From Lytechinus pictus (taxonomy: Eukaryota): 64,000 nucleotides of DNA. This document shows positions 9,048 to 51,109 of this stretch, one piece after another. The stretch covers positions 35,774,001-35,838,000 of the forward strand of contig NC_087251.1 in assembly GCF_037042905.1 (NCBI RefSeq), given 5' to 3'. Positions within the stretch are counted from its first letter, which is position 1, and each line of letters begins with the position of its first letter. The notes beneath the pieces were generated by a model. That model worked only from the letters and a program-made list of their open reading frames with translations. It did not search any database and had not been told where the DNA came from. The position numbers and the translations under genes were made by a program.

Positions 9048-9978
9048 CTGTATTGCAATCTAAATATTATGTACATTGTAGACCTTTCCAATATTTTATA
9101 TTCATGAGTACGCCTTATACTATCCATTTGCCTCAGGGGCGGATCCAGGATTTTCAAGGGGGGCACATTTTCCCGAGGAAAAAATTGATATTTCGTCTAC
9201 GCAAAAGTTTTGACAAGCAAAAAGAAAAGATTTGCCCTATTATGTGTGAATTTATTCATGTCCGCATGATGCATTCATGTGTTAGAGTGATTGTAAAAAC
9301 TTCGGAAGCATTCTTTAAAGAAGATCACTTGACTTTATCGTTTGTTACATTTGAAGGCCCTATTTAATATTGTTCATATGAAAGAATAAAACACCCTCGA
9401 AGAAAAAAATCATAGTCACGCAGACAAGTTCAAGATATCAGTGCCTGAAGAGTTATTGATTTCTCTGCATGGGACAATATTTGTTACATGCGCGTATTAA
9501 TTAAATGAAATTGGGATGATATTTATGGTCATTTTAACGGCGTTTTTTTTTTCGTTTTTTTTTAGGCTCTAAATATTTTTAGCACTTAATCTCCGGGGCT
9601 GAGAAAAAAGGCGTCGATCGGGGGGGGGTCGCCCCTCCAAATAATTTTTACGACTTTAAAAAAAATGCAATGCAAATATATGTTTTAAAAAGCATTGGAG
9701 AGCACTCTAAAACTTCACATAAGAATAGTGTTAAACATACCATATTGTCAATTTTCAGTGTACTTTGCACTCAAAAGTCTGTATTATGATTTTATCATGA
9801 TGTCCCCCCCCCCCCCCCATCCATCCGAAACATGGATCGCCAACCCTGGCAGTGAACAGGATGAATATTCATTTCAAAATGAATTTCCTGTATTCCGTGA
9901 ACAGTTGTAAAACGTAAAGTTTACTTAATCTAAGAGTGGTTGAAACTGAAAATTAAACATAGGGTCCTACCAAATTAA

Positions 9979-10583
9979 AGGGATGGTCCGGGCTGAACGT
10001 ATTTATATTTAAATAAATAGAGTAAAATTCACAAAGCGCAATTCTGAAAATTTCATCAAAACCGGATAACAAATAACAAAGTTATTGAATTTTAAATTTT
10101 ATCAATATTTTGTGAAAACAGTCATATGCACATCATCATGAATATTTATTAGGTGGGCTGATGGTGTCACATCCCCACTTTCCTTTTTCTTATGTTATTA
10201 CATAAAATCATAATTCTTTCATTTTTGCATACATGTGTAAGTGATGTGTCTCCATTATGATGAAATAAGTTGTAGCAATAAATATCTAATGCACTAATCA
10301 GTTGTCAGTCCAATATTGTTATAGTTCTTGGTAGAAAAAAATTTGAATAAACCTAATTTCATATAATAAAATACAAAAAAACAAGTGGGGATATGATATC
10401 ATCAGCCCACCCAATGAATATTCATGAAGACATGCTTAGAACTGTTTCACCGGAATAATGCAAATCTTGAAAATTCAATAACTTCGTTATTTGTTATCCG
10501 ATTTTGATGAAATTTCAGCATTTTGCTCCGTGAATTTTACTCTATTTATTTAAATGTAAATATTTTCAGCCCGGACCATCCAT
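9979..10583. mobile_element. Kolobok-like MITE (TTAA TSD), about 200 nt upstream of SAMD9-like exon 1
   Basis: TTAA|AGGGATGGTCCGGGCTGAA ... TTCAGCCCGGACCATCCAT|TTAA, with inverted arms of about 200 bp. Confidence 0.8.
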
Positions 10584-10787
10584 TTAAGTGAATTTACGTA
10601 TAAGGAACCTCGATATAAGAAGCAGGGGACAGAATGGGAATGATGGAAAGGATCGGGAGAAAGTTAAAACGGGAACGAATGAGAAAGAAAGAGCGTTGGA
10701 AAGAATAAATAAATGATTTTTTTTCTTAGGTTTTTATACACCCCATTTTCAAGCAACCTCTCTCTCTTTGTTTGTTTTGTTACACAG

Positions 10788-10917
10788 ATGGGAAAGAAAA
10801 AAAATTGGAAGAAGTCGCGACGGGCGTCTGATCCACAGCCTCCATCCAAGGAGACAAGTGTACCTCATTCATCTCATTCTCCTGCTCCTGCGCCCCCTTC
10901 AGATGCAGCTCCATCAG
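10788..10917 (+). CDS. SAMD9-like exon 1 (MGKKKNWKKSRR... basic, then Pro/Ser-rich)
   Basis: Preceded by tctctctttgtttgttttgttacacag, so a 5'UTR exon probably lies upstream. ATG at 10788; donor TCAG|gtattt; 130 nt, phase 1. Confidence 0.6.
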
Positions 10918-13706
10918 GTATTTGAACTTCCGAAAGAGGGTCAGAGCCTGACTTTGACGGGGTATAAATGTGCCTGAAAATTTCGACAAGCAACACATTT
11001 CGTACCCTAACAAATTGACAAGCAAAAAAAAGATAAATGAATAAAGGTCATCGCTCATTATTTTTTTTACGGGGTGCAGCTGCATACCCCCCCCCCCTCC
11101 CCACATCCACGCCTTGAAGGTTCAGAACGACATAAATGTAATTCAGATAATCACATGCCTCTCATTTAAAGTCTGCTTCCCACATCAACATCAAAGTGGT
11201 TTTAATAAAAATGGAAAATCGATCTAGTTCAAACATAGTGTCAGTTGTGGGAACGATCTAAAATGTGTTCGAACAGAATTTAATGCAATCACAGTATTTA
11301 TGAAAAAAGTGCTTAACTATTCTGGTGCAGTGCTGAAAAAAATGACAAAACAAGCACGACATTCTAGACAGGTGTCGGATCTTTTCCCGACATCTGAAAA
11401 CAGAGACTTCTACCGTTACAGTGACGAAAACTACGATGCATTTTAGTCTTATCACCATTTACTTGAACTAGATATATAGCTTGCTGAGAAAGCTGTGTTA
11501 CATTGACATGATTGGGGTCGAACCAAAAGTACGAGGCATCTGTAACCTGGACTATCGTACTTGGATTATTTTTATCACTAATTTTGTCTAATTAACCCAT
11601 CAACTTGTCATGGTTTTATTAACTTTTTTTATCTTGCAGATGAATCTCCCACGATCGTGGCTGATGGGAAGACTTTAATTTTTAGGAAAAATGCCACAAT
11701 CAATCGTGGCGATGTAAACACATTCCATGTTGGAGACGTTTATCATCATGACCATACTCATGAGGAACATGGCGGATCTACAGGATTCGAGGGTGAGATC
11801 GTGTATTTCTTTTCCCTTTGATGGAGATTAGACCTATATCATTAGATATGTGTTTATGGGATCAAGCAGATGTACTAGGCTCTGTAGCTCATATCGATCT
11901 CTCCCTCTCTTTCTCTTTCCCTTATTACTCTTTTCCATCTTTCCCTCTATTTTGTTTTCTCTCATACTCGACAGGGAGGACAATACTTTTTTCAAAATAC
12001 TTTTCTCAGCAAGATCGTGCGCTATGTTTACATAATGTTTACATCTGTGTCCTTGTTTGCATATTGCTGCACTTGCCTTTATAAAATCATGTATATAGTT
12101 TCTCATTTTTCCAGTGAGAGACACAAAATTACGTATTCTTTAAATTCAGATAAGTATCTTGATTATTCACAATCAAGAATCGTTTCTCCTTTTATAGAAA
12201 TGGAAGTGGAAGTAGACATCGAACCTTTACCAGATTCTGCAACAACGGGAGAGGTTGATGCTGATGCTACTCCTGAAGCTGATCCTAGAATCCTGAAGCT
12301 CATGCAGAGAATTTTCGCCAATTGCCACAACGTGGAAAAATGGAAAGAGAACACAGACTTTTGCGCCAAATTAAAGACCCTCTTTGAAGAGCAAGGCGCC
12401 CTTCTCAGTAAGGCTCAGTTTGATTCCGTTCATTTCTTCGTTCGTGTCAATGTTGGGCCCAACAGGGATGCCTTCATTCAAGCCTGTAACGACCGTGACA
12501 GCACCTTCTTCCAAGGCTTGACAAGTCTCCTGGTAACTCCAGAACTCGAAGAAGCTGCTGGAATGAAACTCAGACTGAGATTGGCTGTCAAAGACACACC
12601 AGCAAAAGATGTCGTCTCGGCACCAAAAGGTACCTTAGCTTTATACAAAATAATATATTATTCTCATAAGCCTGTAATTTGGGAAGCCACAGAGCTTTCA
12701 CTCTGAAACAAAATTCGGTGTCAAAGTTTTCGGATGCATCCTTGCGATGTGCATAAATACTATGTTTCAAGAACAATATCATACCTGAAGGCAGCAAAAA
12801 GCATTCTCTGACATTATGATAACGTGATTAATGACTCGTTTTAAACTTTGGGGTATATTTTGTTCGAAGCATCTCCTTTCCAAGGTGAAAGGAAGAATAG
12901 TCCTGCATCACCCCTCCCCTTTACGCTTTAAGACCTCCGCACACCTCACGACTGGTCCACGGTCCGATTTGGGGGGAAATCGCATTTTGCTTATTTTCTT
13001 AAAATATGAATGAATATAATATCTTAATTTGAGGTTTAAATTAACTGTAAGAATACTTATATTAAAAAAAGATGATTGCAAGCCTTTATTTTGGAATAAA
13101 GGCCAAATTAATGTAGAACCGTATCCAATCTTGCGACGTCATTACAACTAGATATCAAATTCTCTTTCTCTAATAAGGATGGTAGCATATTCATTAATTT
13201 CAACATATGCATTAGTACGATGATTTAGAACTTTACAGAGTAAGAGGTTCCATGCCTCAATATTCGCATCAAATTTCACTGCGTTTTACTCCAAAAATCA
13301 GATCACAGACCAATTATAAGGTGTGCGGTGTGGCCTTCACTTATTCATGTGCTGACTGCGATGGACAGCGATCCCTTGGGACAGGGGTATCTCCTCCCCC
13401 CCCCCCCCACCTTGGGAATGTTGCTTATGAGGCGAGACGTATGAATTTTCTTTGGGCCAAAATATGCTACGGTATTGAGGTAAAAGCTGGGGGCGTAACC
13501 ATGGTAACAGACATCGGTTGCATGATGTGAACAGGAATGTTAAGCACACCAAGCCTGAGCGCCTGAACGACCAGATTTCATTTTTTTCCCCCTTCTCTCT
13601 TTTTCATTTCTTGTCCAATTTTCTTCCACTTCCGCTTTCTTTCTTTCGTTTCCTCTTCTCACTTTACTTTTCCCTCACTTTCTTTCTCTCCTCCCCTATG
13701 ATATTC

Positions 13707-13751
<45 letters not shown>

Positions 13752-14412
13752 GGGCGAAAATCTCTCCTTCAAGATAGGGGGACACAATTGAGTTTTCCGT
13801 TTTTATGTTCTACAGNNNNNNNNNNNNNNNNNNNNNNNNNNNNNNNNNNNNNNNNNNNNNNNNNNNNNNNNNNNNNNNNNNNNNNNNNNNNNNNNNNNNN
13901 NNNNNNNNNNNNNNNNNNNNNNNNNNNNNNNNNNNNNNNNNNNNNNNNNNNNNNAGAGAACAATGGTAGGCGTAGCTTAAATCAAGGTTCCCCAGAGCTA
14001 TCTACCCTTTTTGGAAAAATTGGTGATGCCGAAAAAAATGTCTCTGCCGGGAATCGAACCCGGGCCCCCAGCTTTGAACGCCGGTGCCTTAACCACTAGA
14101 CCACAGAGACGGGTTAGTGGATAGGGCGACCCCGATCCAATTGACCGTCAGATAGACAGATTTTCGACACCATACCAATTATAATTTCCTTTGTGGTCTA
14201 GTGGTTAAGGCACCGGCGTTCAAAGCTGGGGGCCCGGGTTCGATTCCCGGCAGAGACATTTTTTCGGCATCACCAATTTTTCCAAAAAGGGTAGATAGCT
14301 CTGGGGAACCTTGATTTAAGCTACGCCTACCATTGTCCTCTTCATCCATTTCTTTCACACAATATTTAAATATAAAAAAAGAGTTGCCAAAGCTGTAGTA
14401 CATGTATAACTT

Positions 14413-24331: not shown

Positions 24332-27300
24332 AATTTTATTTATACAGACATTTTTACAACTGTTTAATGAGTTGTTTAATAATGTAGATATGCTACTTTT
24401 TAATTGAACAGTGTGGGATGTTGGCAAAGGCCACTCCCTTTCCGAATCATTATTGTCTCGCCTGCATAGCAGAGCGAGACTAAAGTCGCCTCTTTTCCGA
24501 CGGCAGCGGCTGCGGCGTCATCATTGAAATCTTCAGGTTAAGTTTTTGAAATGTCATCATAACTTAGAAAGTATATAAACCTTTTTCATGAAACTTAGAC
24601 ATAAGAGTAATCATGTATTACTAAACATCATGCCTGAGATTTAGGTCACATGAACAAGGTCAAAGGCCATTTAGGGCCAACGAGCTTAGACCATGTTGGG
24701 AGAATCAAAATCGAAATCTTAACCTAAGATTAAGTTTTTGAAATGTCATCATAACTTAGAAAGGAAAGTATATGAGTCTAGTTCATAAAACTTAGACATA
24801 TGGGCAATCAAGTATTACTAATTATGCTTTCAGGTTATATGACCAAGGTCAAATGTCATTTAGGGTCAATGCATTTTGGCCGTGTTGGGGGCTATTGGTT
24901 GAATTGCAATCATAACTGAAAGATTATGGATCTAGTTCATGAAACTTAAACAAATGAGTAATCAAACATCACGCAACATCCCGTGCGAGTTTCAGGTCAC
25001 ATGACCAATGTCAAAGGTCATATAGAGTAAATTAACTTAAATTATGTTGGGGGAATCAAATCTTTAATAACCAAAGTTATTTTTTATAAAAAAAACTTTG
25101 AAAGTATAATAGATCTAGTTCATGAAACTTGGTAATTAGAGTAACCAGGTATCAGTGAACAACTTGCACGAGTTTCAGGTCACATGACCAAGTTCAAAGG
25201 TTATTTAAGGTCAATGAACTTTGGCCATATTTGGGGGTCTTTTTCGTTGAAAGTTAATGGATATATTCATGAAATGAGGACATAGGGGTAATCAAGTATC
25301 ACTGATCATCTTGTACAAGTCTGAGGTCACATGATCAAGGTCAAATAGCATTTAGGGTCAATGAACATATTTTATTATGGTATGAATTGTGTTTTGTGAA
25401 TAATTATTCTATAGTCGTTTTCAAAGTCAGCACTGCTGCTATATTGAATCGCCTAATGCAGGCGAGATTGCCAGAGGCTTCACTTGTTCACTTGTTATTT
25501 TATATTTATTGTTATATTTTAAATTTATTTCGCAGAATATAAAACAAATCAATTAAACACTTCAGTTCCAGTGACAAAAATAATTGTTACAGTAACACCA
25601 TATTTAGACACTGGATGCACCTGGATGAGCTGCCAGGCATTGGGCAAACTTAACCAAATTACTGTAATCCTCGGACCCGGTTCATACCAGTGAAATATAT
25701 GATCTTTCTTCCTTTTTATTCTCCAGTCCCCATCAAAACCCTCCAAGAGATGAACACAGACGAGGTCAAGAAATGGCTGATTGAGGAATTGCGTATATCT
25801 GTCAGCATAGCTGATAAATTAGCAGAAGCGTGTGTAGATGGGGAGCTTTTGCTACGATATGAAGATCAGCATTTACAAAAGGATTTCCAATTGCCTACTG
25901 GAGTGATGCGAAAGATAATCTATGCTAGAGATTATCATATGAAGAAGCGTGCTCATGCACAACCACACCTCGCACCTGCATCAGAATGTTCCGACAACTT
26001 AAACAAAGACGCCGGAACGACGGGGAATATACATAGATCTCCCTCAGCATCTGGAACACATGAAAGTAAAAGAGATGCGCAGATCACTGAACTTACAGCA
26101 TCAGTGAAGAGGTTAAACACAGAAGATGATGACGTGGGGAAATCAGTGGCGGTAGAAATTTCTCAGCCGGCGCCACTTTCCAAAGAAGAAGAATCAGCAG
26201 GAGAAGCAAAGCTGCGATATCTCCTGACAGGTGATGAGAGTGGATCATTAGACCGTTCTTTCCATCCCGTTCTTGTGGTTAACAAACCTGCATTTGAAGA
26301 ATCTCGAGATGATAAGCTAGAAAGTCTCAAGGAAAGGCTCGACTTTGTTTCTCTGGTGAACTGGAATGCAGTATTTGATTGCAATCCAAAGTCTCGTGAG
26401 GATGGAGTATGTTCAATGGTTGAAGAAAAGCGCGAAATCAAGCTTCTCCTTCCTGAGACATTCAACAAAGAAATTCCACCCGAAGAAGTAGATTTCAACG
26501 ACGTCCCTTCTTGGATATTTTCAAATGGACGAGATGATCTTGAAGAATTACAAAGCCCGAGTCTTGCTTCAGATTGGAATGAAAAATATGGCGCAGGAGT
26601 TGATCGTGCAATAGATTATTTTGCCACGAATGCAATTCCTAAGAAAAGAGCAATCGTTGTTTTTCTTCTTCTTTCGAGAGACAGTGTGCAGGTAATGAGT
26701 GATATCTTCAAGAAATTGCAGTCATCTTTGCAAGGTCAAGGGAATTTCACATTCATTGCAGAAAGTCAAGACCTTTTTGAGATTTGGGCAGATGAAGTCA
26801 AGAAATGGTTACCACGGAATCAACTAGAGCAGCGAAGTTTTATTGGTACTGAATGGAAATATGTTAATAAATTCATTCAGAGGCAATACGAACAATTTGC
26901 CATTTCCCAAGCTGAACTGCCCTTATCAGACGGGAAGGTGTGCAATCTTCCAAACAAGAAGCGCTCTCAATGGCTCAACATAGGTGTTCTTCCGTCAAAT
27001 GAGTGTGAAAACACAGACATGGACGAGGACGGTCCGAAATTCAAGAAATTCGTTTCAAAGCAAGAGTTGACTTTCTACAAAGGAAACGATGTCTCTTGGT
27101 GGAACTTTCACCTAACCGAAGGAAGAGGAAAGAAACAACGATTCAACCAAGTTTTACGACGTGAAGTCAGTAAAACGTTGAACGAGTTAGTAAAGTCGAA
27201 ATGGAAGCCAGCCAATCCGAATGATGGATCTAGCCCCATTGTGACAATAACTATCTTTCATGAACCGGGGTCGGGTGCGAGTACCACCGCAAGACAGGTT

Positions 27301-29826
27301 CTATGGGATTTCCACCATCAACTTCGCTGCGTTATTGTTAAGCGAGCAGTAATGCGAACAGTTGAAGAAATACTTGAAGTCCGCCGATATGGGTATGAGA
27401 GTTCAGAAGAACCTCCACCAGCCCTTGTGTTGCTTGATGACATGGATGATACAGAGGTTGTCGACCTTATTGCACAGCTTGAACGAGCAACTAACAACAA
27501 TGACTGTTTGTCAATTATATTACTTCAATGCAAAAGAACACCCAATTCTGAGCTTTTGGCGAAAGACTCAGTTGTTGTCATGAAGCATGAATTGAATGAT
27601 CAAGAACGAAGATGGTTCGATGACAAATTCAAGGAATATGAAAAGGAGTACAGTATGTGCCCAGAGAAGTTGATTGGGTTCATGGTAATGAAAGAACAGT
27701 GTAACCCAGAATATATTCAAAGAATTGTATCAAACATCTTACGTGAGATGAAGAACAATGCAGATAAGAAATACCACAATGAAGCTCAGCTGCTCAAGTA
27801 CATCGCAGTTATCAATAAGTATCTGGGAGATGTCGGTATGCCTGTGTCCTGTTGTGATGAAATGATGAGTGTAGGAGAGAGAATAAGATGTCAAGGAGGA
27901 TACAGATTGAAGTATGATCCATGGGAAAAACATCTTTCAAATGCGACATGCCTTCTCCTAATCCAAACAGAAGTGCATACAAAATCGGGTCCTACAAATG
28001 TAGTAAAGGTGGTTAACTCTGTCCTTGCAGCTGAGGTTGTCAAGCAACTTGAAGAAGACAATGGCCAAACAATTGGAGAAATTGTCAAGGAGTTCATATA
28101 TGACTCTAAAATCCTTGACTCAAAGGCTTACATAAAGTCGTACATCGAACTCATAATCCGGAGATTACTTGTACAACGGAAGAAGATTGACAATGACTGG
28201 AGAGAAAAAAGTGCATTCTCTCCTTTGGTTGAGCATCTTGTCAAGGAAAATCTAAATCTAGCATTTCAACTTCTTGAAGACACATCTAAAAAATTCAAGA
28301 GTGGATATATTGCTCAGCAGCTGGCACGCTTGTACAAATCGAGAGGAAAGCTTGATGAAGCAGCTCAATCTGCGAGGATGGCTACTGACTTTAAGAGTGA
28401 CAATCCTTTCTATTGGGATACCCGGGGCAGGATCATCATTAGCAAAATGGAGAAGTATAAGGAGCAGCAAAATTACACATCAGTAGACGAGTCTGAAGCC
28501 CCCACATTGATAAATCTCCTGGATGAGGGGATGTGCGTCTTCAAGAGGTGTCAGGACATTTTTGGAGGGGAATACAGTTATTATTCCCCCTATGCTGGCT
28601 ACTGTGGTGAGCTAAAGGTAATCTTCTTGTTTATTCACATAATGGAATTACGTGTATTACCGTTTTGTTCCTCATCCCAAGAATGTGTACGTAAATTGAA
28701 AGTTTACTTCTTGACAGATGAAAACCTTCCGGATCTCAGCGTCTTTTGGAAATACAAACGAGAACATCTTAAGGAGTTACCGAAGAGAGCAGACCTCGTG
28801 CTCGATAAAATCTCAGATCTGATGACATTCAGCAGAGCTAAACCAACAACCAAGCAATACCCTGAAGGCCATCTATGCAAGGTACAGTCCGAGATAGACT
28901 TGTTCAATCAGAAGATGCTTGAGTATTTTACAATTGACATACATCAATCCCCACCAAAGTCTGTTCTAGAAAATTCTTGGAGAAGGGCACAAGTGAAGGC
29001 AATGAAGGCTGATTCTTTCTCTGCCATATTCAAAATGGCACAAGATGGTAAGGAGGATAGCCTAAAGGAAGTTAGAAGCATTCTCAACGCAAATAACGAA
29101 ACAAGTGCCTTTGATCTGAAACTATTGGTCTGCATTTCATTTGCGTTGTCCTCCTTAGGCTGTGAAGATGTTGACTACGATAGAACAGTCAAACTGGTCC
29201 AGAAACTCAATGAAATTGACAAAAGTTTGTATGGTGCCTTCTTTGCTATGATGTTAGCCTGGCCAAGAGATGACCTGACTGCAAGACGTAGTGATGTCGG
29301 GATGTCCCCATGGAATGCAGTTCAGAATCTAATCAAGAAGGGGAAAAGCTTTCTTAGAAAAGAAGAAAAAACACCTCATACTAATCAATCCTTTCAACAT
29401 CATCATTTAAATAAACCTCTCACTTACTTCTTGTTTGCCAAGGGAGAAGGGCTGCAGGCATTCCTCCACATTAACGAGTTCCACGCTTCTCCGTCAACAC
29501 TGGAAGATGAAAGGCATAAGTTCTGGTCGAGAGAAGGAGTAAGCCAGCAATTGGTGCGTCTAGAGGGAACAATTAAAGATAGGGGGAGGATCGTGTACAA
29601 AACCCCTGCAAATGAACACATCTACATTGGACTATCTCGCAGACGGATAAGCCAACCAAGTCAAGAAAGGGTCTCTTTCTACCTTGGCTTCAATTTCCAT
29701 GGACCTGTTGCATTCGACGTTTCCGAAAAACGATCGCACTTCAATCCCAGTTCACGAGAGGAATATCAGCCAGGTGCCGTGTCAGACGTATCCAGGGTAT
29801 CTTGTGGGCAGCATACTTGTCCATGA
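10788..29826 (+). CDS. SAMD9-like: SAMD9/SAMD9L-like STAND NTPase, spliced model: exons 10788-10917, 11640-11792, 12198-12629, 25727-29826 (4815 nt, 1604 aa)
   Basis: All three introns are GT-AG with polypyrimidine tracts and all are phase 1, so the four exons join into one open frame (TCA G|AT, GAG G|AA, AAA G|TC). The last exon is a 4.1 kb ORF, like the single large coding exon of vertebrate SAMD9. Linkage of the three small exons across the 13 kb intron is inferred from phase compatibility. Confidence 0.7.
11640..11792 (+). CDS. SAMD9-like exon 2 (DESPTIVADGKTLIFRKNATINRGDVNTFHVGDVYHHDHTHEEHGGSTGFE), cRHIM-like motif
   Basis: Acceptor ttttttttatcttgcag, donor GAGG|gtgaga; 153 nt, phase 1-1, open frame. 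Not in the ORF track because it is short. Confidence 0.65.
12198..12629 (+). CDS. SAMD9-like exon 3, TRADD-N-like domain
   Basis: Acceptor tttctccttttatag, donor AAAG|gtacct; 432 nt, phase 1-1; the protein-like part of ORF 12017..12706. Confidence 0.7.
13816..13954. other. Assembly gap (139 N)
   Basis: Run of N. Confidence 1.
14039..14110 (-). tRNA. tRNA-like gene, Glu-like body, UCA anticodon, full cloverleaf, followed by T7
   Basis: GTCTCTG TG GTCT AGTGGTTA AGGC A CCGGC GTTCAAA GCTGG GGGC CCGGG TTCGATT CCCGG CAGAGAC A TTTTTTT. All four stems pair and A/B boxes are intact; G32 is atypical. It lies in a repeated element, so it may be SINE- or transposon-borne. Confidence 0.55.
14187..14258 (+). 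pseudogene. Inverted second copy of the tRNA-like gene with a disrupted acceptor stem
   Basis: Identical body and downstream flank, but the 5' strand TCCTTTG pairs poorly with CAGAGAC. Confidence 0.65.
15017..18704. mobile_element. Foldback element with TGT...ACA ends (Ginger-like termini) and modular tandem TIRs
   Basis: TGTTGCACCCACAAATGTAATAA arrays (~20 bp units) and ~59-bp CCAGACCCGG arrays are mirrored at the two ends; inserted in a poly-G run. Confidence 0.75.
18705..20305 (+). repeat. Complex tandem array (~120-370 bp higher-order units)
   Basis: Repeated GACTTGAGGTCAATAATGGTGGTATTCATCTTACCTGAAGTTGTTATGACTCT..GTGGATTTTCAGGAATAGATAACATTAC. Confidence 0.8.
21223..22083. mobile_element. 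TA-flanked MITE (Tc1/mariner-pogo-like)
   Basis: GGAAGGCGGGGTAAGTTG / CAACTTACCCCGCCTTCC TIRs, internal GGGGCAAGTTG repeats, TA flanks. Confidence 0.65.
22150..23125 (+). repeat. ~80-bp tandem array with GCGAGCGCGAAGCGCGAGCTGAAA core
   Basis: About ten imperfect units; the same core occurs inside the hAT-like elements elsewhere in the window. Confidence 0.8.
23193..23365 (+). mobile_element. tRNA-derived SINE (V-SINE-like core)
   Basis: A box TGGCCGACTGG, B box GGTTCGATCCC, core GCCCGTGAGCAAGGCATTTAA; partial copy at 36238-36362. Confidence 0.7.
24453..25488 (+). mobile_element. Diverged copy of the same HINE family, in the SAMD9-like intron
   Basis: TTGTCTCGCCTGCATAGCAGAGCGAGAC ... AATGCAGGCGAGATTGCCAGAGGCTTCACTTGTT. 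Confidence 0.75.
25727..29826 (+). CDS. SAMD9-like: SAMD9-like main exon: SAM, linker, SIR2-like, STAND P-loop NTPase, TPR-like, OB fold
   Basis: SAM: MNTDEVKKWL...VDGELLLRYEDQHLQKDFQLPTGVMRKII. SIR2-like start KLRYLLTG..LD..F.PVLVVNK..LDFV..VNWNAVFDCNPKS, compare SAMD9 KLVKLLTG..LDFLKEIKWFAVLEFDPES. Also FYKGNDVSWWNF; Walker A IFHEPGSGASTTARQVLWDF; Walker B LVLLDD; YIAQQLAR and YWDTRGR in the TPR region; C-terminal VSFYLGFNFHGPVAFDV. Confidence 0.93.
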
Positions 29827-31020
29827 AGCAGAGGAACAAGCAGAAACTCTCATTCGAAAATGTAAGTTGAAAACACCATGTGCAAAGATTAATTAAATAT
29901 ACATGTAAACCTTTTCAACAGGTTATCGGTCAATTATTTTGTTCATATTTTTTCCATCAATGTCGGTGTAAAAAAGAGAAGGTGGTCCGGTAAAGATTTA
30001 AAATTTGGGATGAGGGGTTTATTTTTCAAAATAGAATGTTTAAAAATTAAGTTTATTGACCGATTTCTGATATTTTATTTTTTTAGCAAACTGTATGATA
30101 ATGTTTGCGCCACTCCAGCCATTCCTATCTTGCCTTCATTCACTTTCTCTCTATTTTCCTGCTTATCATTCAATATTATCTATATATATATTTTATTGCC
30201 TTTGTATTACCTTTTTTTATCTTGGTTCTGTAATCCTTATTTGTTTCTTGCTTATTTGTTTCTATGAATTACAGCTTGAAGCAATACGGATGAAATATAA
30301 ACTAGAATCGGATCTCCGGGACATTAAGGCTCAAATTTAGGATGAGATCGAAAGAGAAGACGACGAGGACATTTACCCTCGTAACACGAAAAGATGATGA
30401 GTGTTTTTTCATAGAAATGTGTCTAATTCAATTTATCGTCGGGATGCAGTGAGGTGTGCGATTATTATGACTTAACTGTCACTTGTCACACTAATATAAA
30501 CTTCTAATGCATTGGTTTGAAATATGAAAACAATATTGCTTATGATAGATCCCATATATGGCCCTAACTGCTCACTGGAAAAATGCTAGTATTGAGCGAT
30601 TCCATGCTAGAAAATTAGCAATTTCCACAATATTTTTAACCTGATTTACAACGAGGATCTTCAATTTGTTTCTTGGTAATAATAGAGTACTACTGTATTG
30701 TGAAAAATTGACAACCAACAATAATATGCTGTCCTTATGTGAAATACAGGTCAAAATGATTAATTTCTCAAAGTATAATCTAACAATATTTCTCTAGTGT
30801 AAGATAATTAAGAATTAATCATTTGCATAATATTTGAATGAATTGAGGGTACCCAAATAAAAAAAGACGCAACTTTGGTTTGTGTCCGAAAAATACCATA
30901 CCTTGCGTAAACAATAAGAATTTAAGGACCATGTCATTTTCACCAAATTTAGCAGAAAGTTACTTTTGTATCTGTGCATTATAAAAATGCAAAAAGTAAT
31001 ATAGGTTCATGTGCTTATTT

Positions 31021-33630: not shown

Positions 33631-34961
33631 CAAATGGATCAAACAGTAAACATCCATTCGAATTATTGGCACACCTTTACTTTTGTGCATGCATCAACCT
33701 AATCAAGGGTTATTATAATCCTACCTTTGCCTTTGTCTCTTTCTCGTTTTCAGTCATTAATGAACACTCAGTTATGATGTTTTTATATACATGTACTGTT
33801 AATACACTGTATTAAAATTTTATCTATGTGCCTTTTGCTGTAGCTGCAATTTTCTTTTTTAGCAAATGTTTAAGCAGAGTACATATAATGCAGTTTAGAG
33901 GATTTTTTTTTTTGTTCTATGTTTTTGTATATATGTATAGTTATAGTTATTTTAATATGACTATTACTTGGTAGTTATGATCTATGTTGGGTAGAAACAA
34001 TTTTGTAAAGTAAAGACTGTATACTTACTTTTTAATTTAATAATAATCTTCACAGTGAGTCATTTTCTGTGGATCCTATACCTTTTTAAACAGGCTCAAC
34101 TTTAGCTTACATATTATATATTTAAATATAGATGATGCCCATGGTGTTTGCTAGGAAGTTCGCTGTCTATGAAGAATTGTATATAGGAATGAGTTTGCGT
34201 GTATGTGTGTGTGTATGCTTGTTGTGGAGTGTGGTCTCCCAATGTAGTAGGTTTATTTTGCTTCAAAACTTTGATGTACAGGTTTATCAAGAGTTTCAGT
34301 GTGTGTTTGCTTTTAATGTCATTACGCCTTAACACTTTTAATTGTAGAGGCCTTCAAGATGGTTTTAAGAGGAAAAAAGTATTCAAGTTTTTACGAGAAT
34401 CAAAATATGATATAATTTTTCTTCAGGAAACACACTCAAGTAAAAGTGATGAAATGTTATGGCGCCCCCAATGGGGTGGACAGGCTATGTTTAGTAGCTA
34501 CACAGCAAATAGCAGAGGAGTAGCTATTTTATTTAAGTCTTCTTTGAGAATATCTTTATCATCATCATATTCTGACCCGGAAGGAAGGTTTCTTATCCTT
34601 CATATGAGTGTAAAAGATATGGATCTCATATTGGTCAATGTATATGGTCCAAACAAGGATTTACCAGAGTTTTTTGTTAATATGTTTGCGAAAATAGATG
34701 ATGTAGGTAACTCAAGGATTGTATTGGCAGGTGACTTGAATATCGCAGTAGGTCCCTTGGATTACGAGGGCTCTTGTCCTGTTCACCATAATATTCATGC
34801 TAAAAGTTGTTTTAATATGTATGTCGAGGAATTAAGCCTTGTTGATGTTTGGAGAAGAGACCACAGTCGAGATAAGGTTTTCACACGGCACCAGAAAAGT
34901 CCATTAGTTTCCTCTAGATTGGATTATATTTTTGTGTCCAGTGATTTGTTGACTTGTGTGA
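33631..34961 (+). mobile_element. L1/Tx1-clade LINE fragment: AT-rich spacer plus AP endonuclease domain of ORF2 (ATG 34316)
   Basis: TFNCRGL, DIIFLQETHS, SRGVAIL, DPEGRFL, LVNVYGPN, LAGDLN, LVDVWR, SRLDYIFVS; flanked by the 16-bp direct repeat AAGAAATGCTGCACTT. Confidence 0.9.
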
Positions 34962-36614
34962 AAGAAATGCTGCACTTTATTTAAAACCCATGTCATTTTC
35001 ACCAAACTTTGCAGAGTTGCAGAGGAAGGTATACGTAAGAGGTGCAAACACTAACAAATATGGGTTCATGTGCTTATTTTCAAACTAGCAGCACTTTTAT
35101 TAGAGCAAATGTGTTTTTTAAAACACACACCAAAACGCGCCAAAAGCTTTGTACCTATGTGACGACAAATTTCAAACCATTCTACCATTCATTCAAACTC
35201 GGGGTCATATATTCTTCATATTTTGCAGCACTACAGAGTAAAGTATTTTAAAATTGTAGAGGATTTAAAAAAAAATGGTCCATGGAATAGCTTATTAGCT
35301 TCATAAAATAACACATCGGATTTGCATGCAAATATTATTTTCAGCCTGGAGTACACACCTTTGATAAAACAATGATTGATTGCACCCATGGCCTTTGCAA
35401 CAAAAACGATGAATTCTAGACCCTCGTGTAAAAATTCAAATTTTCTTTGAGGGAACACAACAAATTTTAATCAAGTGTCACTGACTTTGGGTGAAACTAA
35501 CTTCATCCACTTAAAAGTTTTGCATGCACGCTTTAGCGCCGACATGGCCGTAATATCAAAGTGTAGTTGAGTATATGCACATAGTAACTGTGCTATATAA
35601 ATTAACATAATATTAGACAGCATTATACTTATTCAACAAAATTTCCAGGGTTTTTTTAACGTTTTTATGTGTATATATTATCTAAATAATTTTGTATAGT
35701 AAACTGAACACTTTTAATGCATTGCTATAACTTCATGTATATTTGTATCCAATTCGCCCTGTATGAAATCTTTGTTGACTTATATATCGAATTGTCAAAA
35801 ATTGTCAACTTGGTTTTAAACGATTGTTATCGAATTGCGTAAAACTAACTTCATTCACTTTAAAGCTTGTGTATGATATTAATATTCAATCGACGATAGA
35901 CAGCAATATACTATGAAACTTAATGAAAATACAACTTTTTTCAGATATTGAAGAAAAAAAATTATTTCGGCAAAATGTTTACATATATATATTTTGTGGG
36001 TATTTGTGTATTTATGGTGAAAGTTTGATTCACTTTATGAGAATATTTTGTTCGATATTATTGAATTTGTGAAAAGTGTTCGGTAATACGATCCACTACC
36101 GTACGTTTGTTATAAGCTTATAATAGGAAAAGTGGATTAAGTTTGCAGAAGGGAGTAATAAGGTTTTTGGTGGGTCGGCTATTTCGATAATATCTTCCCA
36201 TGATAATAATATTAATTGAATTAATACACCAATGTGGAGGTGCCGTGGTTCGATCCCCGGCTGCGGCACCTTTGCCCGTGAGCTATGCATTGCTCTTTTG
36301 TCCTGCATTCAAATAAATGAAAATGCTATACGTATTCTTGGTAACTATAGGTGTGCACCTGTTTAAAAAAATACATTGTATCGTCTCAATAACAACAGAA
36401 AGTAATACCTTGTCAATGTGAGTCGGAATAAAGAAATTCATAACTATACCCAACTATAAATTCATATGATATGCATTTGTGGGTATATCATGAAGTGCTT
36501 TGCAACCTACAAACCAATTGCATTTGTCACGAAATTACTTTATTTTTTTAGTAAAAACAAAACTATTTCCTTCCAAACATTTCGTTAACTTTTGAGGTAC
36601 ACTCAATCATTTTT

Positions 36615-37489
36615 TTAACGAACCTTCGGAACAACGAACCTTATTTCGTTTTCGGATTAACGAACCTTCGGAACAACGAACCTTATTTCGTTTTCGGATT
36701 AACAAACCTTCGGAACAACGAACCTTATTTCGTTTTCGGATTATCGAACCTTCGGAACAACGAACCTTATTTCGTTTTCGGATTATCGAACCTTCGGAAC
36801 AACGAACCTTATTTCGTTTTCGGATTAACGAACCTTCGGAACAACGAACCTTATTTCGTTTTCGGATTATTGAACCTTCGGAACAACGAACCTTATTCCG
36901 TTTTCGGATTAACGAACCTTCGGAACAACGAACCTTATTTCGTTTTCGGATTATTGAACCTTCGGAACAACGAACCTTATTTCGTTTTCGGATTATCGAA
37001 CCTTCGGAACAACGAACCTTATTTCGTCTTCGGATTAACGAACCTTCGGAACAACGAACCTTATTTCGTTTTCGGATTATTGAACCTTCGGAACAACGAA
37101 TCTTATTTCGTTTTCGGATTAACGAACCTTCGGAACAACGAACCTTATTTCGTTTTCGGATTAACGAACCTTATTTCGTTTTCGGATTAACGAACCTAAT
37201 TTCGTTTTCGGATTAACGAACCTTCGGAAAAACGAACCTTATTTCGTTTTCGGATTAACGAACCTTCGGAACAACGAACCTTATTTCGTTTTCGGATTAA
37301 CGAACCTTCGGAACAACGAACCTTATTTCGTTTTCGGATTAACGAACCTTCGGAATAACGCCACAAATGTTCGAATTAACGAACCCTTTTTCGTTTTCGG
37401 ATTAACGAACATCGAGGTATAGGCAATGTACGTGTTTCGGAATTACGAACCTTCAGAATAAAGAACCTTCGGAATTACGAAGTGTAACC
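36615..37489 (+). repeat. 42-bp minisatellite (AACGAACCTTCGGAACAACGAACCTTATTTCGTTTTCGGATT)n, ending in a TGTAACC terminus
   Basis: About 18 near-identical units. The end motif resembles the TGTAACC end at 48156-48162, so this is probably a transposon subterminal array. Confidence 0.9.
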
Positions 37490-49092: not shown

Positions 49093-49774
49093 TTAAGGAC
49101 TGATTTTAGAAATTCATGAAGAGCAGGCATCACACCAATCCACTAATTCAATTCAAGAGTTCTTTATTCGCTTTAAAAAGCACATATAAAAAAAAAAAAA
49201 AAAAAAATGTATATATATATATATATATATATATACAATATATTCTACAAATAGGCACATTCACAATATATGTAAAGACAAAAAAAAAAAAAAAAAAAAA
49301 CATCAACAACAAAATACATGTATAACAGGGTAAGATCAGAGTGTGCATAAATACGAGATAATTTCCTCGCACTCCTCTCGGGTTCTACCCCCATTCCACT
49401 GACCATCGGAACCTGATCTGACGCCAATCTGATCCCAATTTTGCAAAAATGTCAGCGCTCCGATGAGTTCCGATGAAAATTCACCCGACATCCACTTTTT
49501 TTGGTCCCTGTTTTCCGTAAAATCCTATAAAGATCCAACATTGATCGGGGTAATCGGATAAAGGACTGGTAGCGGCCCGATGTCTGTCCGCCATTTTCAT
49601 CGGCAGCGTCCGATTGATTCGAATGTGGTCGGATTGTAATTCGAGGGTGGCCTGACACTAATCTGACACTTCCAACACTCTCCCGACATCAACCCGACAT
49701 ATCGGTTGCTGTTCGGAGGGTAATCGGACACTGACCCAATACTGGTCGGATTTTCGCCAAAATCGGCAGTCGAG

Positions 49775-49781
49775 TATAAAA
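49775..49781 (+). promoter_or_regulatory. Candidate TATA box of the Harbinger transposase
   Basis: TATAAAA starting 36 nt upstream of the ATG at 49811. Confidence 0.4.
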
Positions 49782-49810
49782 GCAGGCTGCACCTCCTGAC
49801 AATACTAGAC

Positions 49811-51109
49811 ATGGATCAACTTCTTCGCAACACTGCAGCCCTGGGCTGTGTTTTTATGCTCCAGCAACAAACTATGCAACAAGACGCAATAGTCCTTCAG
49901 GTCCTGAGAAAGAGGCTGAGAAAAAGGCGAAGAAGACCACGTAGTTATTGGGTTCGACCATGGCTGCAAGCTGAGAGAAGGCTGTTATATGGGCACTACA
50001 CCAGACTCTTGAATGAACTAAGAATGGAGGATACAACGGCATTTTTCAATTTCTTGAGAGTTACGCCAGAATTTTTTGATGAACTACTCCAGAGACTCGC
50101 ACCAAGACTCACGAAGGACGATACCAATGCCAGGAGAGCCCTTGAACCTGGTCTCAAGTTAGCCTGTACCATAAGGCACCTTGCAGCTGGCGATCGGTAT
50201 CCGTCACTGTCATACAGTTTCAGGGTTGCTCGAGAAACCATTTGCAAGTTTATCCCCGAAGTCTGTCAAGCCATAGTGGATGAGTATGCTAATGAAGTGA
50301 TCCAGTGTCCCACCACCGAACAAGAATGGCGTGCAATTGCTGAAGAATACGAGAGGCGTTGGAACGTTCCACATGTAATGGGGGCACTTGATGGCAAGCA
50401 CGTGGCACTCAGGAAACCAGAGAACTCCGGCAGTCTCTACCATAATTATAAACATTTCTTCTCATAGTCCTCATGGCACTTGTTGATGCTAACTACCGGT
50501 TCTTGTGGATAGACACCGGTGCTCAAGGACACATGTCTGACGCGCAGATATACAATGCATCTGAGCTCAAAGAGACAGTGGAGAGTGGTCAAATAGGATT
50601 CCCCCACCTGAGCCAATGACCAATGACAACCAGAACATGCCATATTTCATGATCGGGGATGACGCCTTTGCTTTGCGAACCCACATGATGAAGCCCTACT
50701 CGAGAAAGAACCTGAATCGTACAGAGCGGTGTACAACTATCGCATAAGTAGAGCCCGAAGAGTCGTGGAAAATGCCTTCGGAATACTAGCAGCCAGATTC
50801 CAGTGTCTTCTAGGAACACTACAGCAACAACCTGATGTTGTGCGTAACATCATAGAAACATGTGTCTGTCTCCACAACCTGATTGGAATACGGCACCCAG
50901 CCATGCACCATGGTCAGCTGGATACAGAGGATACCGACCAAAACATCATACCAGGAGAATGGAGGAACATGGCTCCCATGCATGAAGTACCAACTCCAAG
51001 AGGACCCTTCCGCGACACAGCAGAGGCCAAAGCACAGCGTGAAACCCTAAGACTGTACTTCAACAATCCTCTTGGAGGAGCAGTTCCTTGGCAGGAGAGG
51101 ATGATTTGA
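49811..51109 (+). pseudogene. Harbinger (HARBI1-like, DDE_Tnp_4) transposase with three -1 frameshifts (near 50464, 50603, 50729)
   Basis: WVRPW; FFNFLRVTPEFFDELL; LAAGD.Y.SL...FRV; GALDGKH, then after shifts SIVLMALVDANYRF, PYFMIGDDAF, KPYS and YNYRISRARRVVENAFGILAARF. The D-D-E triad is present. Confidence 0.9.

Follow-up and report, generated by a model that had tools for sequence, protein, structure and literature searches.

A small exon of a SAMD9-like gene in the sea urchin Lytechinus pictus encodes a short conserved peptide core, [V/F]-H-[V/I]-G-D, with an aliphatic-x-aliphatic strand 8 and 6 residues upstream and H-[H/N] directly after it. The gene lies in a window of 64,000 nucleotides (nt) of contig NC_087251.1 (RefSeq assembly GCF_037042905.1, forward-strand positions 35,774,001 to 35,838,000), and coordinates herein count from the first nucleotide of that window unless another locus is named. 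The core is placed N-terminally in a SAMD9-like STAND-type sensor, ahead of an alpha/beta adaptor-like domain and a SAM domain. We tentatively read the exon, at a little short of an even chance, as a portable, intrinsically disordered homotypic beta-motif of the type found in Imd, that is, a RIP homotypic interaction motif of the cryptic kind (cRHIM). The original prediction, made from the letters of the window, had proposed a cRHIM-like amyloid motif at this position; its conserved core, the existence of other carriers and the Imd-type core were upheld, while the RHIM model gave no match and any resemblance to human RHIMs outside the core was not significant.

The 27-residue peptide first reported, NATINRGDVNTFHVGDVYHHDHTHEEH, is exactly the translation of 11690-11770 on the plus strand, and it does have its own exon, 11640-11792, with acceptor ttgcag, donor G/gtgaga and joints observed in RNA. 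This exon 2 is 153 nt (51 codons) long, is in phase 1 at both ends according to the RNA joints and the translation, and encodes (D)ESPTIVADGKTLIFRKNATINRGDVNTFHVGDVYHHDHTHEEHGGSTGFE(E). Two Logan transcript contigs, X1 (5915 nt) and X15 (5621 nt), from two runs of different studies, splice 10788-10917, 11640-11792 and 12198-12629 in frame across GT..AG introns (depth ~38 and ~33). The exon call on the plus strand thus draws on GT..AG joints from two studies, the translation, a paralog and a Strongylocentrotus purpuratus ortholog. Within it, the conserved motif block TINRGDVNTFHVGDVYHH (11696-11749, plus strand), delimited by DNA alignment to S. purpuratus and by invariant columns, contains two tetrad-like units, INRG and FHVG, with Asp-Val after each. 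The counterpart of the core tetrad FHVG (11723-11734, plus strand) is VHVG in S. purpuratus; the receptor tails described below have VHIG in its place. The His cluster HHDHTHEEH (11744-11770, plus strand) is HHDHTHVEH in the paralog, and outside Lytechinus only its first two positions are kept.

Conservation in homologous exons was one of the points on which the original prediction was to stand or fall, and the core is kept in both the paralog and the S. purpuratus ortholog, with the consensus [DE]V x T [VF] H [VI] G D [VI]. The tandem paralog, 138 kb away, retains DVNTFHVGDV(F)HHDHTH and is 90% identical to the window copy across 2.3 kb, introns included. The S. purpuratus locus has all three of the small 5' exons, with exon 2 at L006:7666-7833 (phase 1-1) and a core reading LNVGDVDTVHVGDIHHH, in which H-V-G-D is invariant. 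This ortholog of exon 2 reads ...SKTLTVRHVYTLNVGDVDTVHVGDIHHH, with an acidic stretch next, and contains a repeated tetrad-like unit, LNVGDV / VHVGDI. Between the two species the exon 2 products share 44% amino acid identity, including invariant T, N, DV, T, HVGD and HH. At the DNA level only 11695-11750 of the exon could be aligned (84% identity over 56 nt, versus 72% for exon 3), and the introns were not alignable. A search for further orthologs of the N-terminal exons returned only S. purpuratus P0032, which begins at exon 3. Because the core is kept in paralog and ortholog, and because a profile of the exon finds the receptor tails, the motif is, as judged by these comparisons, more than chance would be expected to produce.

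Other proteins with a similar motif, for which the original prediction had suggested a search, were found as a receptor tail in both species and as a Death-domain protein in S. purpuratus. A profile built from three exon peptides was searched against 1.84 billion representative proteins, and the true matches were P0022 (the window gene itself) and P0024 (the Death-domain protein) only. P0021, P0023, P0025, P0027 and P0029, which carry bacterial cadherin-like repeats (TINVSDVNE), together with the PD40-repeat protein P0026 and the repeat protein P0028, were rejected as summed weak repeat matches. In the L. pictus genome the profile identified exactly one further locus, ...NVNIQITLATKDVETVHIGDVHNKRD, with a six-frame E value of 0.23. 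The exact DNA pattern T-x-H-V-G-D-[VI] occurred 12 times in the genome and 5 times in a reversed control; the 10 matches outside the two known loci fell in stop-broken frames, repeats or a reverse-transcriptase open reading frame (ORF) and were discarded.

The further locus (G000:C5:7598484-7599764, minus strand; L021) is a 427-codon exon that comes after several Cys-rich exons and one for a transmembrane segment, and therefore encodes a type I receptor's cytoplasmic tail. The tails of its S. purpuratus orthologs, P0030 and P0031, are 41-45% identical to it, and VETVHIGDVHNKR is invariant in both species at 13/13 positions, the longest invariant run in the tails. When scored with a profile from the SAMD9-like exons alone (Z = 30000 proteins), the receptor tails reached 16-18 bits (E = 0.0025-0.012), and 5000 shuffles of the tails gave at most 9.4 bits. 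Pfam identified no domain in the receptor; its look-alikes under a protein language model are small receptors of the tumor necrosis factor receptor (TNFR) superfamily (score 0.82, a lead only). The relation between the receptor motif and exon 2 is either old or convergent. The disordered receptor tail also has other conserved islands, namely GKVVTE..SGTVHPH, RRSSL, NGRNG, PTDSSS, AIPDD and KLLDP.

The second carrier, S. purpuratus XP_030829569.1 (P0024), is a protein of 272 aa in which ...LHIGKVENVHVGDIHNH... precedes a Death domain (PF00531, 31 bits). Its motif exon shares 79% DNA identity with exon 2 of the S. purpuratus SAMD9-like gene, and the similarity continues for ~135 nt into the downstream intron. 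The duplicated segments are L047:10001-10252 and L006:7664-7970, and the copy lands in the first coding exon of the Death-domain gene. It was captured in the same phase, with VHVGDIH intact, and is a visible case of exon shuffling. The copy is most simply explained as a duplication within the Strongylocentrotus lineage, because the intron of the copy still aligns although introns are unalignable between the two species, and because the L. pictus ortholog is without the exon. Gene conversion may be an alternative origin.

The comparison with described motifs depends on how strictly these are defined. RHIMs span 18-22 residues with a core of (V/I)-Q-(V/I/L/C)-G (PMC13506858; bioRxiv 10.64898/2026.02.19.706818), and cRHIMs are defined by VxxG or IxxG, with the Gly alone invariant (PMC9387487, PMC10268257, PMC13506858). 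The Drosophila IMD (DmIMD) core is LHFG and that of shrimp IMD is VHIG, the deletion of which abolishes aggregates in electrophoresis on semi-denaturing detergent agarose gels (SDD-AGE) (PMC10268257); VHIG is also found in Aedes IMD and PGRP-LE (PMC9531809). The Imd core used in the original prediction is therefore borne out by LHFG in DmIMD and VHIG in shrimp and Aedes IMD. The urchin cores fit the cRHIM pattern, with the Gly invariant in 6/6 sequences: both the SAMD9-like and the Death-domain protein of S. purpuratus have VHVG, the receptors of the two species VHIG, and L. pictus has FHVG, whose departure at position 1 has a parallel in the Leu of DmIMD. They do not fit the RHIM core, since all urchin sequences have His for Gln at position 2; positions 1, 3 and 4 do fit in S. 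purpuratus and the receptors. In this comparison the motif is within the loose cRHIM definition and outside canonical RHIM membership.

Beyond the tetrad, we compared the urchin sequences with RIPK3, in which the nucleation-driving residues are V450, I452, V458 and V460, followed by G461 and D462 (bioRxiv 10.64898/2026.02.19.706818). At the corresponding positions -8, -6, 0 and +2, the S. purpuratus exon has L, V, V, V and the Death-domain copy L, I, V, V; the paralog has I, I, F, V, the window copy I, R, F, V, and the receptors L/M, T, V, I, so that most copies conform to the pattern, with a flank score that is not significant. The S. purpuratus stretch L-N-V-G-D-V-D-T-V-H-V-G-D thus has aliphatics at all four of the RIPK3 tetrad positions, and then Gly-Asp. 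The RIPK3 12-mer NIYNCSGVQVGD, which is aggregation-competent, shares 3-5/12 residues in register with the urchin 12-mers, which places it among the highest-ranking 0.02% of 41,108 background windows.

The occurrence of a similar motif in a sensor, a receptor tail and a Death-domain protein suggests a putative shared, polymerizing signaling tag. Under the proposed mechanism, the NTPase core would oligomerize and so gather several copies of the motif, which could then pair as an intermolecular beta-sheet, possibly an amyloid-like polymer. Such a polymer could recruit proteins with a similar motif, i.e., the Cys-rich (perhaps TNFR-like) receptor in both urchins and the Death-domain adaptor in S. 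purpuratus. Binding, polymerization and an immune role are what we infer from anatomy only. The wider proposal, an urchin cRHIM-type amyloid-like network that joins a TNFR-like receptor, SAMD9-family STAND sensors and, in Strongylocentrotus, an Imd-like Death-domain adaptor, is doubtful, and we would rate it as unlikely.

Several results weigh against the Imd/cRHIM-type reading. The RHIM likeness that the original prediction proposed to check with a profile did not appear, as the Pfam RHIM model gave no match to the exon peptide at E ≤ 1, and the profile A2, searched against all PDB chains, returned no solved RHIM chain at E ≤ 10. With the core type held fixed, the RIPK3 flank was only in the top 7% (n = 83), so that the likeness to RIPK3 outside the core and its Gly-Asp is not significant. 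The RIPK1 12-mer showed no likeness beyond the core, and the comparison with arthropod Imd is confined to the tetrad. The receptor motif has no DNA similarity to exon 2, and their common descent is therefore unproven; a complex prediction of P0022 residues 46-104 with receptor tail residues 315-375 scored 0.00, which counts neither way. The paralog adds little independent support because it is a young copy, 90% identical even in its introns. Across the whole of exon 2, the ratio of nonsynonymous to synonymous substitution rates (dN/dS) is ~0.9 between paralogs and 0.7 between species (range 0.7-0.95), and most of the exon therefore evolves almost freely, with constraint confined to the core. 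In Diadema setosum the gene includes the exon-3 domain, and no exon-2 homolog was detected in the 10 kb upstream; neither tblastn nor a regular expression detected a motif exon in the 21 kb upstream of the L. pictus Death-domain ortholog (C1).

The most serious of the other explanations, although an unlikely one, is that the peptide is a linear motif or beta-strand that a third protein binds through one of its folded domains, or that acts in cis as an autoinhibitory strand on the exon-3 or SAM domain, with no polymer formed. The receptor, the sensor and the Death-domain protein would then share a binding partner without binding one another. A short conserved island in fast-evolving sequence of low model confidence is typical of linear motifs, the receptor tail has several other such islands, and no RHIM profile matched. 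The block is, however, long for docking, at 18-26 residues; it alternates between aliphatic and polar positions and has Gly/Asp/Asn turns, its tetrad-like unit is repeated (LNVGDV / VHVGDI), and its core equals the aggregation-driving cores of arthropod IMD. That same dN/dS of 0.7-0.95 would also suit a fast-evolving linker with no specific function, in which the likenesses to cRHIMs and to the receptor are chance resemblances between beta-prone peptides. The receptor's E value in the six-frame genome search was no better than 0.23, the profile used there also collected bacterial repeats of unrelated cadherin-like and PD40 type by adding up weak matches, and the cRHIM definition, with only its Gly invariant, is very loose. 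We nevertheless consider a linker improbable: the core alone is alignable as DNA between the species, at an identity above that of exon 3, the receptor block is fully invariant against a background of 41-45%, the proteome-scale E values are low with no shuffle exceeding 9.4 bits, and the exon copy on the Death-domain gene retains VHVGDIH.

Two narrower explanations address parts of the peptide. The His/Asp-rich segment (H-V-G-D-x-x-H-H plus HHDHTHEEH) might form a metal site (Zn/Ni/Cu) or a pH sensor and not an assembly motif, as six His fall within nine residues in both L. pictus copies and every carrier retains the tetrad His, the Asp behind the Gly and the His that comes next. The original prediction had likewise raised pH or metal control, an idea that weakened on comparison since the long His run is found in Lytechinus only and other carriers share just two post-core positions (H-H or H-N). 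S. purpuratus has HHH and then the acidic stretch, the Death-domain copy HNH, and the receptors HNK (HNKR); the conserved aliphatic positions are unexplained by metal binding, and Pfam matched no metal-binding family, all of which makes this explanation very unlikely. Less probable still, to the point of being remote, is an origin of the exon as what remains of a single PD40/TolB-type beta-propeller blade. A weak Pfam PD40 match (E = 0.056; 13.9 bits against a cutoff of 20.9) points that way, as do the alignment of bacterial P0026 to profile positions 2-39 (shared ADG[RK]..F, AT, GD.NTF and D[IV][FY].HD) and a hairpin at IVAD-GK-TLIF in the AlphaFold2 (AF2) model. Yet the score adds up five nearly identical repeats, one blade is unable to fold by itself, the gene has no propeller context, and the PD40 repeat lacks the urchin-specific core HVG, which is inserted relative to it. 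The PD40 likeness is best read as mainly a shared beta-hairpin propensity.

A homology search identified the host as a SAMD9-like P-loop/STAND-type protein, in agreement with the STAND protein assumed in the original prediction. Exon 4 (25727-29826, plus strand), placed by homology and by the splicing of the paralog, encodes a SAM domain and the SAMD9-like core with the P-loop FHEPGSGAST, and its SAMD9-like homologs come from urchins, a sea star, a crinoid, an acorn worm and vertebrates (E = 0 to 1e-51). These homologs carry SAMD9-like annotations, and its product is 70% identical to L. pictus P0002. The SAM domain and the homology of the core identify a SAMD9 family member, with the P-loop GSGAST present; the Pfam match on the host, to nSTAND_NTPase5, was weak (E = 0.088). 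At 29580-29870 the C-terminal tail is frameshifted relative to the paralog P0002 after ...FDVSEK, with pieces of the P0002 tail (YPGYL..., ...KKRRNRQKL...) in the two other frames of the window, and the window copy therefore ends early at 29826, though it is transcribed.

Three small exons precede the SAM domain, encoding a polybasic Pro-rich segment, the motif and an alpha/beta domain of ~135 residues, all with phase-1 joints. Exon 1 (10788-10917, plus strand; RNA joint 10917/11640) has a polybasic start, MGKKKNWKKSRR, then a Pro/Ser-rich segment, and ends in phase 1; its start is conserved in S. purpuratus at L006:6685-6738. The contigs extend past the aligned stretch by 238 nt 5' of 10788 and 4962 nt 3' of 12629. 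A further 5' exon upstream of exon 1 is likely, because of the 238 additional nt and the start of P0022, MVVGK-MGKKK. N-myristoylation of MGKKK was accordingly dropped, as the Gly is probably not N-terminal. From its length, we infer that the 4962 nt of 3' contig sequence is exon 4. The NCBI model of the window gene, XP_063957562.1 (P0022), has exons 1-3 and then runs on into the intron; the paralog model P0002 splices exon 3 straight to the large SAMD9-like exon. In the window, exon 3 (end 12629, phase 1) is in frame with 25727-29826, and exons 1-4 together make up a stop-free stretch of 1604 codons.

Exon 3 (12198-12629, plus strand; phase 1-1, RNA joint 11792/12198) encodes a ferredoxin-like alpha/beta domain in the AF2 model, with a predicted local distance difference test (pLDDT) score of 75-87 over residues 99-235. 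Structures matched by the model include TRADD-N (1f3v_A, Foldseek E = 0.019, rank 9; 1f2h_A, Z = 5.7 with 108 residues aligned, rank 6), which is not set apart from unrelated folds, with 1f2h_A tied with many unrelated ferredoxin-like folds and an IS200-type transposase as the top match (Z = 7.4). Pfam found no domain match in exon 3, including TRADD-N (PF09034). The motif region of the AF2 monomer has a pLDDT of <50 and forms only the small hairpin mentioned above, which is compatible with a motif that would be disordered until assembly, although a low-confidence model proves little.

No reads covered exons 1-3 in two raw-read RNA runs (~6% sampled), and expression is therefore sample-dependent. 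A contig of low depth (2.2, where the spliced form has 38) continues past exon 3 into the intron at 12630-12795, fits the read-through 3' end of XP_063957562.1, and is probably intron retention, not a separate short protein. At 9924-10667 and 13024-13147 the summed contig depth is in the thousands, and numerous variants and joints occur on either strand; copies of dispersed repeat elements lie here, flanking the 5' exons of the gene. The 13-kb intron between exons 3 and 4 includes 139 N (13816-13954), an assembly gap or masked sequence. Elsewhere in the window, we noted by eye an open frame at 49724-51106 (plus strand) that resembles a Harbinger/PIF-type transposase (…RARRVVENAFGIL…) and another at 34193-34981 (plus strand) that resembles a non-LTR retrotransposon endonuclease, as well as a ~42-nt tandem repeat at 36555-37213 with several frames open (…NLRNNEPYFVFGL… repeated).

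RHIM signaling is known from vertebrates and their viruses, and cRHIM signaling from insects and crustaceans. Several other invertebrate phyla are reported to lack Imd and RHIM-bearing PGRPs (PMC9835746). The searchable literature describes no RHIM/cRHIM carrier in echinoderms and no link of RHIM/cRHIM to SAMD9-family proteins. The type of motif is known; what is new is that, in a deuterostome invertebrate, it sits on a SAMD9-like sensor and a Cys-rich receptor, and that its transfer to a Death-domain gene can be traced. The human relatives of the invertebrate SAMD9-like proteins are important antiviral and disease genes, and the reading, if true, would offer a testable output mechanism for invertebrate SAMD9-like proteins and a first sign that this family signals by prion-like templating. 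An Imd-type core shared by an urchin sensor, receptor and Death-domain protein would also bear on the age and portability of the assembly motif, and the network would be the first in a non-chordate deuterostome, with a place between the cRHIMs of arthropods and the RHIMs of vertebrates. The S. purpuratus exon copy, if confirmed, would be a rare DNA-level view of such a motif being wired onto a new adaptor.

Among known systems, the arthropod cRHIMs (Imd, PGRP-LC/LE and Pirk; Aedes IMD/PGRP-LE; shrimp IMD/SRB2) share with the urchin motif a His at position 2 and the Gly at position 4. The receptor VHIG matches the core of shrimp and Aedes IMD residue for residue, and VHVG and FHVG are comparable to DmIMD LHFG. 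Arthropod cRHIMs recur in several members of one pathway (a receptor, an adaptor with a Death domain, a regulator), and the urchin motif likewise lies within disordered parts of three kinds of carrier, namely a receptor tail, a sensor in the cytosol and a small Death-domain protein, which may or may not act together. The last of these (P0024), with the motif followed by a C-terminal Death domain, has the layout of Imd. In contrast to the arthropod systems, the urchins are deuterostomes, and the carriers are a SAMD9-like sensor and a Cys-rich receptor, not a PGRP or SRB2; P0024 is a lineage-specific exon capture and, as far as tested, not an Imd ortholog. With the mammalian RHIMs (RIPK1, RIPK3, ZBP1 and TRIF) the motif has in common the Gly at +3, the Asp at +4 as in RIPK3 and, in most copies but without a significant flank score, aliphatics at -8, -6, 0 and +2, and it differs from them in the His for Gln at position 2 and in having no kinase attached.

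Human SAMD9/SAMD9L have a homologous SAM domain and P-loop/STAND-like core (vertebrate SAMD9L, E = 1e-76 to 1e-51), whereas in the urchin gene three additional 5' coding exons precede the SAM domain, and no such N-terminal motif was present in the vertebrate SAMD9/SAMD9L models retrieved. In the STAND amyloid systems of fungi and bacteria (HET-s, PP and sigma; BASS), a short N-terminal motif on a STAND NTPase recurs in a separate effector or adaptor, which oligomerization of the sensor could template. The urchin arrangement would follow the same logic. It differs from these systems in its sequence pattern and in its partner genes, which are unlinked and on other chromosomes, and in that an adaptor-like domain and a SAM domain follow the urchin motif.

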